Positions 20,501 through 26,500 of a DNA stretch of 64,000 nucleotides are shown piece by piece (the stretch's first letter is position 1; the number at the start of each line of letters is the position of its first letter). A model generated the notes under the pieces. The model saw only the letters and a list, made by a program, of their open reading frames with translations. It was not told the origin of the DNA and did no database searches. A program made the translations under genes and the position numbers. The DNA comes from Trichoplax adhaerens (lineage: Eukaryota > Animalia > Placozoa), in contig NW_002060952.1 in assembly GCF_000150275.1 (NCBI RefSeq), positions 580,482 to 644,481 of the forward strand. Direction: 5' to 3'.

Positions 20501-23500
20501 AACCGATTAACTGATTACTGATTTTTCATGAATGCATAGGCTGAATTAAGCGCCAAACGCGATAAGCAGAGAAAAGACAAGTTACATCGCATCGCTAGAA
20601 TAAATGCTCGCTCTTGTGGAATGCATCCAATTATAGGCAGTGAATTAGTAGCTACGTTGCGGGAATGTACGAAATATGATAATAGTAAATCAAAGCAATG
20701 GACTCATTGTACGTATTCCAATCATCCGAAAAGTATAGATGGTTCTTTATTCTGGGATTACACTAACACTTTAATAGCTACGTTAAATGTACGGGAAACA
20801 ATGTTGACTCATCTTCAAGGAACCATGAACAGGTCGATTTACGATATCATGCCACTAACTTTATGCGATATTGGGTTACTGATTGCAGTATTATATTAAA
20901 AAAATAGGTTTACGATGTACACGCCAGTTGTGTGTGTGCCACCCATTGAATTACATGCTAGCCATCCGGCGCCATCCTATTTGACTAAAGAAAGTCGACG
21001 AATTGAAATTTTAAAATCGGATCTCAGAAAGCCTTGCTTGGATTTGCATACATCAGCTACCCGTCAGTGTTTCAATTTTCCTGACAGAAGGCTAATTCAA
21101 TACGATTGTGGTATGTCTACCTTAATTATATTACAACCATTTTTAGTTGACTGATTTTGTTCATATTTTTACATTTTATTATAGGAAAATTGCAGGCATT
21201 AGATATATTATTGCACGACTTAAAAGCGAAAGGGCATAGGTATGTAGTATTAGAATTAATAATGTTGTTTATTCTGGAAGTAATTTTATTTTATATATTT
21301 CTGTCTTATATGTTTATATTTTAGAGTTTTAATTTTCACTCAAATGACGAAGATGCTAGATATTCTTGAAAAATTTCTGAATTTTCACGGTCATGTATAT
21401 TTAAGGCTGGACGGTGCAACACCTGTAGAGCGTCGCCAGGTAAGATTTTCGTAAACATCCCGTATAAATTTCCCTAATGAACAATTTTAATAATCTTGGA
21501 TATCTATTGTTACTTTAGATGCTGACAGAGCGTTTCAACAATGACAAGCGCGTTTTCTGCTTCGTGTTATCCACTCGGAGTGGGGGATTAGGTGTTAATC
21601 TAACCGGTGCGGATACAGTGGTATTTTATGATAGCGACTGGAATCCGACCATGGATGCGCAAGCACAGGATCGGTGCCATCGAATTGGGCAGACACGTGA
21701 TGTTCATATCTATCGGTAAAGATTATATTACTATTAACATTATACAATTTTGGAAACTGTTACTTAAATATATACTTTCGGGTATATATGATAAAAAGTA
21801 ATACGATGTGAACCTTTATTGTGAAAAGATTCTGAGGAAAATAATTTTAAAATTACTTAGACTGATATCCGAATTTACTATCGAAGAGAATATATTAAAG
21901 AAAGCGAACCAGAAACGACTCTTGGGAGGTGTTGCGATCGAGGAAGGCAATTTTAATACTGCCTTCTTAAAGAAGGTAGGCGAAATTATACTTTGCTGCA
22001 GTTTTATTTGTTAATTAATCCCCTTTCTACATCCTTGCTTCATTTATTCCTTCTCGAAATAGGACCATATTCAAGAGCTTTTCAGCGTAGATCAGCCAAC
22101 TCAAAACAAACAGTCTTTGGCCACTATTGAAGATATAGAAGAAGAAGTAGCCGTTTCTAAAGAGTTATCAAAAAATCATTTCACTCAAACTGAATTCGAA
22201 CAGGTACCAAAACCTTCTTTTATCTTTACGGTATTTTAAATGTTTCCCGACGTTATCGGTATTTGCCTGTATTACCAACCTAACAGCCACGTCAATTGAC
22301 TGTCGGATTTTGGCTTCAGGCAGAAATAAGATATTTTCCATAGGATACAAATGCTAAGCATACAAACACTTGTGTTTAGTTCTATTTCGTGGATATACCT
22401 ATAGTGCAGTATATGTACAGTACTATTATGTTCGCAATAATTTTAGTAAATTATGACGTGACTTCAATGATACGACCTAAAATTTACAACCTTTTCGTAG
22501 GCTCTGTTGCTAGCGGAGGATAAAGTGGATGCTCAAGCTGCGACACAGGCTAGAGTAGAGCAAGCGGCTGATCTTGCAGAATTTAATGAAAGTGTCCCAT
22601 TGGATACAGATGTAAGTTGATAATGTCTAAAAAGTATTCTGCCGGAGAACGTGGAATAATTTATAACTATTCTTTGCATCAGGGTGCAACAACGAGATCT
22701 GTTTCTGAAGATGAAGAAACGCTAAAATTAGAAGAAGAGTTTGTTACGTTACAAAGTCAAGTAAGTACCTAATTTATCACTCGTTAAGTTTACGTAATTG
22801 CTGAGAATATCAAAATCATCTAGCTCAACCCTATTGAAAAGTACGCTGTAAACTTCCTTGAAAAATCGTTGACTGCGGAAACGAAGCAGCGGATACAAGC
22901 GGCTGAGGTTAGTTTCAGCAATCTAATTCCTTTTTATATTTCAAAGGTGTGTAAATACATATGTATATGTTTATTACTACCATCATTATGCAGCAAGCTG
23001 TAGCCATTGCTAAGAAAGAATGGGAAATTACACATAAAGCAGCATTACAGGATGTTAATAGAAGTTCAAGCGAAGAAGCAAATGATCTAATTTTCGCGTC
23101 GGAGCTCAGCAATAATCAGGTTATTAACCGTACCAATCGTAAAAGAGTTGTAAGCACGGATCATGTATACAACGTGCAAAAATCGTCAGTAAAGTTATCT
23201 AGGAAAAGATCTATAAATAATTAGCACTAAAATCCTGAACTAATAGATTGGTATTAGAAATATTTATTATCTCACAGCGCTAAACAACCATACGTTAACA
23301 CTCCAGGTGGAAACGTTTCATTATTAACTGTACATAGTTTATTCGCAATACAATGTTTTTAAATCTTTACTAATAATTGCTTGGGCAAGTTCCTTATTAA
23401 GGAAATTTAAAAATTTTTTATCAAGTTGAAGTCAGCAGTGCTACTTTATGAACATTTTGTATATAGAATCTTCAAAAGATCTTACAAGTTACATTTCTTA

Positions 23501-26500
23501 GTCCGTTTAATTGTTGTGAAATAGCGACATATGAAATTTCAAATGACATCTTTGTAAAAATGATGTTCTCGTTATAGCCTGATAAGGTTGCTTCTTGACT
23601 TATTAAAAAAATTTTATATTAATGAAGTCTGGATTCATCATTCACTTGTGTATTGGTTTCATGCTCTTTGGGTAAAGGGTCAAGCTTACTGGTGGTGTTG
23701 GTGTGCCTTTACATATCATACGCGTAGTTTTACATTGAGTCTCTAACTGAATGTTGTAATGTAATAATAGAATATAAATCAGTTTAAATAAAAGGGTGGG
23801 TGGGCTAGCGTATGTCTAAACAGTTTTATTTAAAATTGTTGTACCTCACCAGCACCGTCTACGCTTGCCCGCACCACCCAATAGAGTTAAAAGATCGATA
23901 CCATGAATGACGAAATCCGTGATACTTAGTACTGTACATGGAAATGTACATGACAGCTTGTACAAATGATACTACTGTATCCGGCTGTATGCATGTCATA
24001 AGATTTTAATTGGGTAATATATGATGTAGAAGCTAACACGGATTATTCTTTCATTTGAAGTTGTTGACATGGATGCCACCAACACCACCAGATGATGCTG
24101 ATGATAACGGTAGCACGCTAAACGAGCGATTAAGAGGATATCAAAATTCTACATTATCTGAATCTGATCAACCACCACCGCATAATGCCAGGTTAGTGAA
24201 TTTATCAGGTTGATGCAGATCAGCACTATCAGAGATACTAGCTTTTTTAAGTGATACACAACACATTAAATATTTACTCGTATATATCGAACATTTTAGA
24301 AAACATGAATTCGATGCATTCGGTATTAAGAAAAAGCAATCTTTCTTCGGTTGGTAGTGTAATTACATTCGGTATTTATAATTACATGCTATTGTCGTAA
24401 ATTAGTGGAGTTAGAAGTTTAATTGTATCAATTGCAGATACAAGGATGAGAAAGAAGGATCAAAGGTTTGTATAGGCTTACTCCTTACTACCGAGTTTAT
24501 CAAGATTTAGATTTATAAACGTAAACTTCTTCAACTTATTAGAGACTATATTCGCCCACCGCGTTCATTGTTTGATCGTAAATATGTGACTGGTGGAGAT
24601 AATCGATACGTGAGTAGGAAAGTTAAAGGAAAGTTAAATAAACCACCATTACCTCTGAATGTAAGACAGACAGAAACCAAGGTAATAGAAAAATCTTTTT
24701 ACTCAATATTGCCACTTTAAATGTGTGGTAAATTTCGCTTTTTTGCTTTAGCCATTTCCCGATTGGGCTATTGCTGATGATTGGGCGTTACTGCAGGTTA
24801 TTGTAATTCATTTTGGTATCCATTACCTTCAAAGTCATCTTTATTAATTTTAAATTGCTACGCAGGCGATACGTACTATCCTAGACCTTCCACTCAGTTT
24901 AACTGTTTCGTATCCTGCCCATAACATCAATTGGGATCTCATTAGTAATGTTGTCAGTTCATCTGGTCAGATTTACAGATCTCCGCGGCAGGTAATATAA
25001 AATAATGTATGTAGAATTATGAATTTCTAGTTGTATATTTCTGTTTCATCGGAATTTGTTTTATATTCAGTGCCGTGAACGTTTCTTCAACACTCTTCAG
25101 CAACGGGAAGAGGGCAAGGTATGCATATAGCAAGTTGCATATGGAAAAATTATTTATTGTAGACATAATCTTTAACATATTGAAATTAGATTGCGGCTGA
25201 GCCAGCGAAAAAATCCAAAAATAAAATCAAAGTAATGATAAGAATGGCACGGTTTTACTTGCTTAATTTCTTTGGATTATTGAATTCTATTTGATGCAAT
25301 GATATTTAATGATTAAAAAATTGGGTATTCTAGGTAAAAGTGAATAAAGGCTTACAGACACATCAATTGATATCTCAGGATAAGGGGCGGACTCAAGTTG
25401 GTGGATATAATGGAGTTTTTGATATGGTAAAGCGAATTGGTAATAAGAGGAAACCAACATTACGACAGATGTAAGTAAAGCATTTTAGCATGTTTTATTT
25501 CGCTTACAGATTTTAATCGTTGAATGATTAATGAATAATGTTTTAATAAACTTTAATCACGGTAGGCTTGTCATTTCGCATCATAAAAATTCTAAACATA
25601 TCGAATCATTAAAGAAAAGGTTGGTATCGCAATTTTTAACTCATTGTTGGCTATATATATCTTATAACTCATTCTACATTGATTAATTGGTAGTGTTACT
25701 ACCACGAGCACAATAACGCCTATACAACTAGCAGCTAAAAGAGTTGAACGGCTTACGAAAGAAAAGGTAACTTAAAATAGTTTTTATACTATCGTAGTAG
25801 CAGTTTATAACTTTATATACACACCAAGGGTCACTAAACTGAAATAATTTTTATTTGTAGGTTCAACAGCAGCAATTATCACACTCACAACAAACTTCGC
25901 AGCAACCATCATGGAGTTCAAATCTTGGTGCTACAACTGTATGTTTACATGCATCGAATCTCACTCGCTATTGGATTAATTTGTGAACATAGATTGTTGA
26001 TAGATGAACAAAGATAGCTTATAATTTAAGTACAGCAATTAATTGCCCAAATTGTATCAAAATAATAAATGATGTTATTTTTGCAGGCTTCGACTGCTAC
26101 CATTAGGCCTATATCACTAACAACAACCACTTTAAATAGCCAAGTAAAAGGTATATTTTTTACCATATTACAATGATTTAGCGCAACATCACTCAATTTA
26201 AAAATCTTATTTACGTAATATTGCTTACTTTATAGCCACTACAGCGAATATTACGGCTAGTTCTGGAGGAAGAGTAAACACAACTATAATTCAGCAATCT
26301 CATCCTGCTTCAACTACGGTTGCATCAACACAACATAAAACCACTGTAGGGAAAGAGTATTTAAATTCGATATTTGACCTGCGTGTGATTGATTTTATCT
26401 TCTATTTAGGCTAGCTCAGCTCAACAATCTCATCAAGTCATAGGAAAAGGGCAAGTTACTACGACTGTAACTACTGTTACCGGTCGCTCTGTCTTGACAA

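Follow-up and report, generated by a model that had tools for sequence, protein, structure and literature searches.

A conserved, structured intron region that may govern access to the first p400-type exon of a placozoan domino gene

What does the intron between the shared ATPase part and the p400-type exons of the Trichoplax adhaerens domino gene contribute to the processing of its pre-mRNA? A sequence-only reading of this locus had proposed that an RNA fold gates polyadenylation within the intron and thereby chooses between SRCAP-like and p400-like products. The question was addressed computationally in a 64-kb stretch of T. adhaerens DNA (the window). Three orthologous contigs from ENA metagenomes (L003-L005) served for comparison; effectively, three distinct sequences were available (n = 3), two of them 94% alike.

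Gene layout around the 941-nt intron

The predicted layout identifies the gene as a single SWR1 ATPase of the domino type, with HSA and a split ATPase first, then the WxPPTPP motif, a SANT-like region, and finally a Q-rich tail. Pfam detected EP400_N, HSA, SNF2, and Helicase_C domains; a Myb/SANT domain was called by Pfam neither in this gene nor in a crinoid homolog. Alignment by eye matched the KKEWE of the exon preceding the intron to the homologous stretch in domino proteins. Domino homologs aligned both to the WxPPTPP exon and to those at 24752-24991, and a Q-rich open reading frame (ORF) was found at 26793-27575. Among the homologs retrieved, the WxPPTPP motif occurred only in forms that also aligned to SANT-like exons. 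No second SRCAP-like ATPase was found in the genome, where the ATPase exons of the best paralog were only 45-53% identical; the proposal of a single SWR1-type gene thus held.

The intron itself (Table 1) lies where the sequence-only reading had placed it, directly before the WxPPTPP motif and between the shared ATPase part and the SANT-like exons. Reading of the sequence also recovered its claimed boundaries and the 34-codon read-through. Both the acceptor of the intron and the donor of the following exon are kept in the orthologs. An in-frame alternative donor, GTAAGC, is present at 23150 within the read-through segment. The read-through tail showed no recognisable domain and no SRCAP-like feature, and a word search with its ORF gave no match. 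The segment lies beyond the stretch covered by the orthologous contigs. The description of this intron as the longest in the gene was correct among introns delimited by homology (others about 60-450 nt) and could not be extended downstream, where no exon was recognisable at approximately 25.1-26.75 kb.

Table 1. Positions of features in and around the intron, numbered from the first base of the window.
Feature	Position	Strand	Description and basis
Exon before the intron	22994-23119	+	Ends in ELSNNQ, phase 0; sequence reading
Intron, 941 nt, GT-AG	23120-24060	+	Donor GT 23120 (CAG/GTTATT), acceptor AG 24059-24060, phase 0
Donor read-through	23120-23224	+	34 codons, then TAG 23222-23224; end of ORF 22961-23224
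Conserved intronic block	23405-23935	+	78% identical overall to L003-L005, islands 87-97%; alignment and identity profile
3' splice-site-like start of block	23413-23439	+	U-rich tract, then three AGs; kept in L004
ATTAAA	23602-23607	+	Same position in three species; followed by conserved GU-rich 23643-23655
Segment Ic	23627-23660	+	Outer 5' arm of long hairpin, pairs with G; duplex and consensus folding
Segment D	23663-23704	+	5' arm, partner R or exon; contains S1 (23689-23703); folding, duplex
Apical hairpin	23730-23764	+	Small, 8 bp, one compensatory A-U to G-C change; consensus fold
AATAAA	23787-23792	+	AATAAA / ATTAAA / none across three species
Segment P	23794-23812	+	5' arm of P-R hairpin, G-run rich, invariant in all orthologs; P-R duplex -35.5 kcal/mol
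Segment R	23845-23886	+	3' arm common to P (local hairpin) and D (long hairpin); folding
Segment G	23893-23921	+	Partner Ic or branch point/polypyrimidine tract/3' splice site; duplex
Acceptor region	24033-24067	+	Candidate branch point CUAAC 24033-24037, helix partner 24037-24044, polypyrimidine tract, AG, first exon bases; all complementary to G
First p400/Dom-A-type exon, 131 nt	24061-24191	+	Motif distribution in homologs

Conservation and folding of the intron block

Identity among the orthologs amounted to 40-62% in neighbouring introns and 74-88% in exons. Judged by alignment against this baseline, about 500 intron bases are as conserved as exons, and the block at 23405-23935 is under purifying selection. 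Indels within the block are not multiples of three, which indicated that it is not coding. The U-rich tract and AGs at its start constitute a candidate internal exon start. DNA and covariance-model searches of the 105.6-Mb genome matched only the block's own locus among the candidates sampled. The multiple genome copies expected of a mobile element, or of a MITE bearing terminal inverted repeats, were absent among those candidates.

The GC-rich stem at 23794-23812/23860-23879, on which the sequence-only reading had centred, was present with 18 bp, one bulge, and one U-U mismatch. The additional 13-bp pairing that it had described between 23691-23703 and 23847-23859 was also found, with three G-U pairs. 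The minimum free energy (MFE) of this P-R hairpin was -37.2 kcal/mol (z = -4.46 versus dinucleotide shuffles, with 0/200 shuffles as good). In a scan of the whole window its stability ranked about 20th and is therefore by itself not unique; what sets the hairpin above chance is its conservation. Its 5' arm is invariant in the three species, and the three changes in its 3' arm (A to G opposite U, C to U opposite G, and a third in the bulge) all preserve sense-strand pairing. The proposal that the fold lies on the sense strand was borne out by these retained G-U wobbles. The same applied to the covariation check proposed for the stems, in which the relatives were found to keep the fold with compatible as well as compensatory changes.

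The hairpin described earlier is one part of a larger conserved structure. The consensus fold of the three species was a sense-strand, imperfect hairpin of about 66 bp, in which 23627-23704 pairs with 23849-23929 (full consensus hairpin, -80.2 kcal/mol) and for whose 3' arm the P-R hairpin competes. Its D-R part was the MFE fold in all three species (about -70 kcal/mol; z = -4.0, -2.9, and -3.2) and included one compensatory pair, 23690 with 23861. Its consensus energy was -54.9 kcal/mol in sense versus -34.3 kcal/mol in antisense. RNAduplex energies for its outer segments Ic and G were -25.5, -20.5, and -24.0 kcal/mol across the three species, which falls within the extreme 0.13% of the null drawn from the whole window. 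When the exon was included, the consensus MFE had a z of -3.7 relative to conservation-preserving column shuffles and a structure conservation index (SCI) of 0.71. D-R, D-exon, and P-R duplexes all lay beyond the full set of 1707 control windows.

Segments of the same structure can also pair with the acceptor and the exon. An 8-bp helix, 23914-23921/24037-24044, adjoins the candidate branch point and the 3' splice site and carries two compensatory changes. Column-shuffled alignments yielded such a helix with two compensatory pairs 0.03 times on average (p about 0.03-0.05), in a setting where GGU-rich and ACC-rich segments make mutual complementarity easier than column shuffling assumes. Exon positions 24066-24105 are complementary to D. 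Within D, the 15 nt of S1 (23689-23703) match the complement of exon 24077-24091 perfectly, as part of an intron-exon duplex of about 30 bp. The S1 15-mer was the sole non-satellite perfect inverted repeat of at least 14 nt within 600 nt in the 64-kb window (null expectation, 0.25). In each of the three species the D-exon duplex scored between -53 and -56 kcal/mol, a level reached by 0/1707 other windows, and 2.7% of synonymous recodings of the exon paired with D equally well. The snail Candidula, the one other animal checked, had no comparable intron-exon complement.

Proposed splice-site control and competing explanations

Contacts of the conserved structure with the branch point, with the 3' splice site, and with exon sequence point first to splice-site control. 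We give about an even chance to the proposal that the 3' two-thirds of the intron form a structured region that acts in cis on the domino pre-mRNA, governing how accessible the branch point, the 3' splice site, and the beginning of the first p400-type exon are. In a first state, Ic and D would zip with R and G into the long hairpin, leaving branch point, polypyrimidine tract, AG, and exon free, so that the intron would be spliced to 24061 and yield the full-length SANT/Q-rich form. In a second state, the nearer arm P would capture R in the P-R hairpin and release D and G. G could then pair over 24037-24067, taking in the branch point, polypyrimidine tract, and AG, and D with approximately the first 40 nt of the exon (24066-24105), and splicing to the hidden acceptor would be delayed or blocked. 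The RNA would have to switch between these states, in a balance possibly set by a factor or by folding kinetics at the invariant G-run arm P, and the blocked state might result in intron retention or an intronic 3' end.

Sense-strand helices of both states were predicted in the three species, some with compensatory changes, and the modelled alternatives are close in energy. Pairing of G with Ic and with the 3' splice site had similar energies in all species, and state 1 was favoured over state 2 by 1.0 kcal/mol in L004, by 4.1 kcal/mol in L005, and by 13.4 kcal/mol in the window species, in which switching would consequently need kinetics or a factor. In the core state-2 helices (D-exon, P-R, and G-3' splice site), 8/9 variable pairs still pair, such tallies being partly circular in that the structure was predicted from the same alignment. 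With three distinct sequences, two of them nearly alike, covariation power is low and amounts to four compensatory pairs in key helices. Furthermore, the best-supported helices, D-R and G-3' splice site, can coexist in one static structure, so that covariation alone requires no switch. That a bistable fold toggles domino between a full p400/DOM-A-like product and a short SRCAP/DOM-B-like product is an unlikely extension of the model; the short product would arise upon masking of the acceptor and exon, from transcripts with an intronic end or with the intron retained.

Gating of cleavage and polyadenylation by the fold, at AATAAA 23787-23792 or at another intronic site, would instead make transcripts either end in the intron, encoding a short SRCAP/DOM-B-like protein, or splice to the p400-type exons. 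The position of the intron, exactly between the shared ATPase part and the WxPPTPP/SANT-like exons of a genome's single SWR1-type gene, would suit such a choice, as would the two C-termini that arthropod domino genes yield via alternative processing (PMC7239659). Masking of the acceptor would favour an intronic 3' end, and the acceptor-like tract at 23413-23439 is conserved as expected for an internal terminal exon, a layout found in Nmnat (PMC2724269). The hexamer at 23787 was, as claimed, the only AATAAA in the intron and lies 1 nt before arm P. It is not conserved: AATAAA or ATTAAA occurs at this position in 2/3 species, one relative having ATTAAA and L005 neither, and its frequency is that of chance, with about 1.25 copies expected from base composition in this AT-rich context. 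The ATTAAA near 23602, another candidate signal, is present in 3/3 species and followed by a conserved GU-rich stretch. Conservation, however, runs about 140 nt past the hexamer at 23787, and the strongest covariation occurs at the acceptor rather than at a poly(A) signal. Also against this explanation, the 34-codon tail is without a recognisable domain and the short ORFs behind the acceptor-like tract stop at differing places in the three species. Poly(A) gating is possible, but on balance doubtful.

Helices that merely fold away about 300-400 nt and join the splice sites, without regulation or a second isoform, would be in keeping with the length of the intron relative to the other homology-delimited ones, with the 145 nt looped out by the D-R hairpin and the 115 nt looped out by helix 23914-21/24037-44, and with state 1 as the MFE in the window species. 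A helix that covers the AG together with the branch point and polypyrimidine tract should, however, impede rather than assist use of the acceptor, and such an aid leaves the invariant competitor arm P and the approximately 30-bp exon complement unexplained; a block with no other function could, moreover, simply be deleted to shorten the intron, making helices needless. We consider constitutive assistance distinctly unlikely. An independent stable RNA, whether one of snoRNA/scaRNA type or a long hairpin from which small RNAs antisense to the exon are made, is very unlikely, even though the element is conserved, structured, sense-strand, and intronic, another intron of this gene is a possible H/ACA host, and the published Trichoplax screens, based on homology and RNAz, were unable to detect ncRNAs specific to placozoans (PMC2655684). 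The ordinary snoRNA or scaRNA that the sequence-only reading had named as a possible refutation had no match in Rfam: when both strands of 22000-25500 were scanned with cmscan at E ≤ 10, the sole match was a chance L20-leader outside the intron. Upon inspection of the alignment, C/D- or H/ACA-box-like strings were either not conserved or lacked flanking terminal stems. The element is also single-copy, with no family members in the genome among the candidates sampled, and the compensatory helix and the 15-nt complement bind it to the neighbouring acceptor and exon of its own pre-mRNA. Least probable is that the block has no part at the RNA level, being instead a DNA regulatory element, such as an enhancer or internal promoter, or the decaying remnant of an inverted duplication that took in the exon start. 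Conserved intronic non-coding blocks are often transcriptional elements, and S1 could derive from an inverted copy of the exon start, but the compensatory pairs and the strand-asymmetric substitutions, in which sense G-U wobbles would be A-C mismatches on the other strand, argue against it. A neutral relic would not keep 90-97% identity beside neighbouring introns at about 50%.

Relation to known RNA switches and possible meaning

Most documented cases in which competing long-range helices control splicing come from insects and mammals. In chicken beta-tropomyosin, upstream intron sequence base-pairs with exon 6B and represses its use, which resembles the D-exon pairing proposed here; exon 6B differs in being a tissue-specific, mutually exclusive exon of a vertebrate.

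In Drosophila Nmnat, mutation and rescue have established that conserved stems, which mask acceptors or loop them out, act as a switch that selects either an internal terminal exon or a distal acceptor (Raker et al., 2009; PMC2724269). Conserved complementary boxes within one intron (Nmnat intron 4) choose there between a proximal option, an internal terminal exon with a poly(A) site, and a distal acceptor, as they would in the placozoan intron; in Nmnat the choice gives proteins with different C-termini, and the boxes are nearly invariant among species. Nmnat uses a single stem that loops out the proximal acceptor, with an effect proven by disruptive and compensatory mutations, whereas the window intron, known from sequence alone, has several competing helices, one over the distal acceptor and another over the exon start. 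Competing RNA pairings have also been described in mammalian Ate1 and in Drosophila PGRP-LC and Dscam1 (PMC7797038, PMC6191721, PMC12962786). There, one segment has two possible partners and the choice sets the processing outcome; the counterparts here would be R (partner P or D), D (partner R or the exon), and G (partner Ic or the acceptor). Those genes select mutually exclusive or alternative exons, in contrast to an apparent single acceptor and exon, possibly with an intronic 3' end, in a non-bilaterian. Drosophila domino, with its DOM-A and DOM-B isoforms, shares with the placozoan locus a single SWR1-type gene in which a common HSA/ATPase part precedes the exons of the SANT/Q-rich form (Scacchetti et al., 2020; PMC7239659). 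Both fly isoforms are documented and RNA structure is not reported in the available part of that paper, whereas the placozoan case is known from gene layout and its short isoform is hypothetical. Based on conservation, compensatory changes, and helices over the splice site and branch point, we assign the element, with modest confidence, to the conserved long-range or competing pre-mRNA structures.

A well-conserved case in an early-branching animal would show that structure-based control of splicing is old. The element is located in the gene for a remodeller that joins SWR1 and NuA4 scaffold functions, precisely where the shared ATPase part gives way to the part specific to p400. If the bistable toggle were true, the arthropod logic of one gene for two remodellers would predate Bilateria and would here be run by RNA structure. 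The locus, whose helices are short and clearly delimited, would offer a testable handle on whether the division of labour between SRCAP and p400 began as alternative processing of one gene.

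Gene context and features of the intron

The Trichoplax adhaerens genome assembly (105.6 Mb, 1414 contigs, roughly 33% GC) carries a domino-type gene on the + strand, at about 15.6 to 27.6 kb of the window. Full-length crinoid, sea urchin, insect and spider domino homologs, used as tblastn queries, delimited its exons as far as 22611 and again over 24758-24991; homology searches used single exons one by one and not a spliced full-length protein. The next-best SNF2 exons of the genome showed 45-53% identity, whereas SRCAP/domino proteins of other animals were about 75% identical to the window gene, indicating that it is the genome's sole SWR1-type ATPase gene. 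When annotated placozoan proteins were sought with a large SNF2-ORF profile search, matches were only 57-82% identical, and the ten clusters examined all came from other animals. Among retrieved homologs, the WxPPTPP motif was confined to those that also aligned to the SANT-like exons. A single SWR1-type gene and this motif distribution show that the premise of the sequence-only reading, one gene with an intron just ahead of WxPPTPP, is sound as far as it could be checked. The SANT-like exon piece had no match in Pfam and the exon peptide none in PDB. From the final exon identifiable by homology to a Q-rich ORF (26793-27575), about 1.6 kb (25135-26790) contains no recognizable exon; this stretch may be an intron longer than the one studied here or contain poorly conserved exons. 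The description of 23120-24060 as the longest intron could be checked only as far as 25.1 kb.

Direct reading of the sequence reproduced all coordinates proposed for the 941-nt intron (23120-24060).

Features of the domino gene and of the studied intron (window positions)
Feature	Position	Strand	Source
EP400_N	ORF 15630-16325	+	Pfam
HSA	16388-16606	+	Pfam
SNF2	18793-20178	+	Pfam
Helicase_C	21519-21719	+	Pfam
Donor CAG/GTTATT	23120	+	sequence reading
Donor read-through, 34 codons then TAG	TAG 23222-23224	+	sequence reading
13-bp pairing	23691-23703 with 23847-23859	+	sequence reading
AATAAA, single in intron	23787-23792	+	sequence reading
Stem, 18 bp	23794-23812/23860-23879	+	sequence reading
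Acceptor AG	24059-24060	+	sequence reading

The exon that follows (24061-24191) is 131 nt long and can therefore not be a frame-preserving cassette exon. The 87-aa read-through ORF had no match in a word search. A second in-frame donor, GTAAGC, lies 30 nt into the intron (23150-23155); its use would add 10 residues and bring the spacing from KKEWE to the W of WMPPTPP nearer to that of other domino proteins.

Conservation of an intron block in related species

The small ORF that overlies exon 24061-24191, used as a word-search query, led to one cluster of three members, on ENA contigs L003 (ERZ27264358), L004 (ERZ23498939) and L005 (ERZ27263980), which represent the orthologous locus from two related species: L003 and L004 were 99% alike, L005 was 94% identical to both, and all three showed 71-78% identity to the window. 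Acceptor, WMPPTPP exon and the exon's donor were kept. Against a downstream baseline of 74-88% identity for exons and 40-62% for short introns, the latter essentially unalignable, intron block 23405-23935 was 78% identical overall, with islands of 87-97% (23413-23470, 23529-23588, 23619-23648, 23678-23707, 23796-23825 and 23856-23885) separated by variable spacers. A coding interpretation of this block was rejected, since indel lengths are not divisible by three and ORF ends differ.

Upstream of 23402, L004 is unrelated to the window; this part of its intron (L004:1-538) includes a CCGGAA-rich stretch. The L004 intron exceeds 1190 nt, its greater length probably resulting from an insertion. 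Together with a contig from a run assembly (L002, Logan SRR30664517), these short contigs from public assemblies represent relatives 71-82% identical in the domino gene, and could serve comparative work on other loci; none of the contigs appeared human. The invariant arms, used as exact patterns in two scans of JGI metagenomes, had no match. In the snail Candidula unifasciata, the one other animal examined, the intron before the WCPPTPP exon contains no comparable intron-exon complement. At this locus (contig L006:38396-38437 and 39867 onward), the residues preceding WCPPTPP lie on a 14-codon mini-exon, and the intron ahead of the W is at most 2 codons from the Trichoplax intron position.

Alternative pairings of the intron, acceptor and exon

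The hairpin noticed from the sequence alone pairs arm P (23794-23812) with arm R (23845-23886). It folded at -37.2 kcal/mol (z = -4.46) and ranked about 20th in a fold scan of the whole window; as about 20 loci fold equally well, stability alone was rejected as evidence for an element. The window's strongest folds, and nearly all its long perfect inverted repeats, lie in arrays of GTACAGTAC/TACTGTAC-type short repeats (45700-46900, also 13400-14400 and 36400-37030). An intronic segment, 18261-18376, also stood out in the scan (GC-corrected residual z = -2.75); an orthologous contig (Logan SRR30664517) begins just downstream of it.

The stem is retained in the relatives and the proposed preference for the sense strand was borne out. 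Arm P is invariant across orthologs, and the three changes in arm R (A23861G opposite U, C23877U opposite G, and the bulged A23873U) are all compatible with sense-strand pairing, while antisense pairing would break. In longer folds, R prefers a distal partner: in all three species (the window species and those of L004 and L005), pairing of arm D (23663-23704) with R gave the minimum free energy (MFE), about -70 kcal/mol, with z-scores of -4.0, -2.9 and -3.2. The consensus fold reached -54.9 kcal/mol on the sense versus -34.3 kcal/mol on the antisense strand and included one compensatory pair (U-A to C-G at 23690/23861). Extended, it became a single imperfect hairpin of about 66 bp at -80.2 kcal/mol, in which 23627-23704 (arm Ic, 23627-23660, plus D) pairs with 23849-23929 (R plus arm G, 23893-23921). 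The P-R duplex (-35.5 kcal/mol) thus competes with this hairpin for one 3' arm, and imposing it in the isolated 240 nt cost 7-10 kcal/mol.

Segment 23689-23703, within D, matches at all 15 nt the reverse complement of exon positions 24077-24091, which encode PPTPPD. With GTACAGTAC-type satellites excluded, this is the sole perfect inverted repeat in the window of at least 14 nt within 600 nt; a second-order Markov null gave 0.25 expected at this length, and no repeat of at least 15 nt arose in 20 simulations. Inclusion of the exon shifted the consensus fold: D paired with 24066-24105 (about 30 bp), P-R formed, and G paired with 24037-24067, covering a candidate CUAAC branch point, polypyrimidine tract and AG as well as the start of the exon. 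This fold had an MFE z-score of -3.7 against shuffles keeping the conservation pattern, and an SCI of 0.71. In each of the three species the D-exon duplex scored between -53 and -56 kcal/mol, a level that no other 76-nt window reached (0 of 1707); equally good pairing was retained in just 2.7% of synonymous exon recodings. In the 8-bp core of the acceptor helix (23914-21/24037-44), C-G is replaced by U-A at one pair and U-A by C-G at another, both of them compensatory changes; such helices occurred at a mean of 0.03 per column-shuffled alignment. Across the core D-exon, P-R and G-3' splice site helices, pairing was kept in eight of nine variable pairs. Weak points of this comparison are its three sequences, its few compensatory events and the G/U-rich and C/A-rich composition of the arms.

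Two global states can be drawn over 23540-24210: one in which Ic and D pair with R and G, leaving the acceptor free, and one combining P-R, D-exon and G-3' splice site pairing, which would mask it. They differed by 13.4, 1.0 and 4.1 kcal/mol in the window species, L004 and L005, respectively. In the same order, G paired with Ic at -25.5, -20.5 and -24.0 kcal/mol and with the acceptor at -20.6, -21.0 and -21.6 kcal/mol, which are similar energies.

Possible polyadenylation and probable control of the p400-type exon

The sequence-only reading placed an RNA-gated polyadenylation switch at the AATAAA of 23787-23792. The hexamer is present, and single in the intron, at a frequency expected by chance (one in 941 nt versus 1.25 from composition); it reads ATTAAA in L003 and L004 and is missing from L005. 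An ATTAAA at about 23602 occurs in all three species, with a 97% conserved GU-rich stretch downstream (23619-23655), and the conserved block opens with an acceptor-like sequence (23413-23439) made up of a U-rich tract plus three AGs. Based on these signals, it is conceivable that 23413-23660, whose short ORFs have different endpoints in the three species, acts as an internal terminal exon. Such an arrangement would resemble Drosophila Nmnat, in which a conserved stem chooses between an internal terminal exon and a distal acceptor (PMC2724269). Two domino C-termini arising through alternative splicing are described for flies, other insects and a spider (PMC7239659). Ant isoform X7 was rejected as a DOM-B analog because WCPPTPP and the SANT-like region are still present. 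Coupling of the fold to intronic polyadenylation and a short SRCAP-like isoform are both hypothetical.

Other identities for the element were weighed. For an ordinary snoRNA or scaRNA no counterpart was found: an Rfam scan of 22000-25500 (E <= 10) gave no family match in the intron, and conserved, canonically placed C/D or H/ACA boxes were not seen on inspection. A repeat, mobile element or multi-copy family was rejected, as genome-wide DNA and covariance-model searches matched only the locus itself. An editing-site complement for ADAR was also considered; ADAR is not known from placozoans, and the perfect duplex spans just 15 bp.

Compared with its first description, the element has gained both in size and in support. 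Most likely it acts in cis, as a pre-mRNA structure that controls acceptor use at the first p400-type exon, probably via competing helices. The mechanism would be of a known kind (Nmnat, Ate1, PGRP-LC, Dscam); what is new is its occurrence in an unusually early-branching lineage and in a gene of interest.
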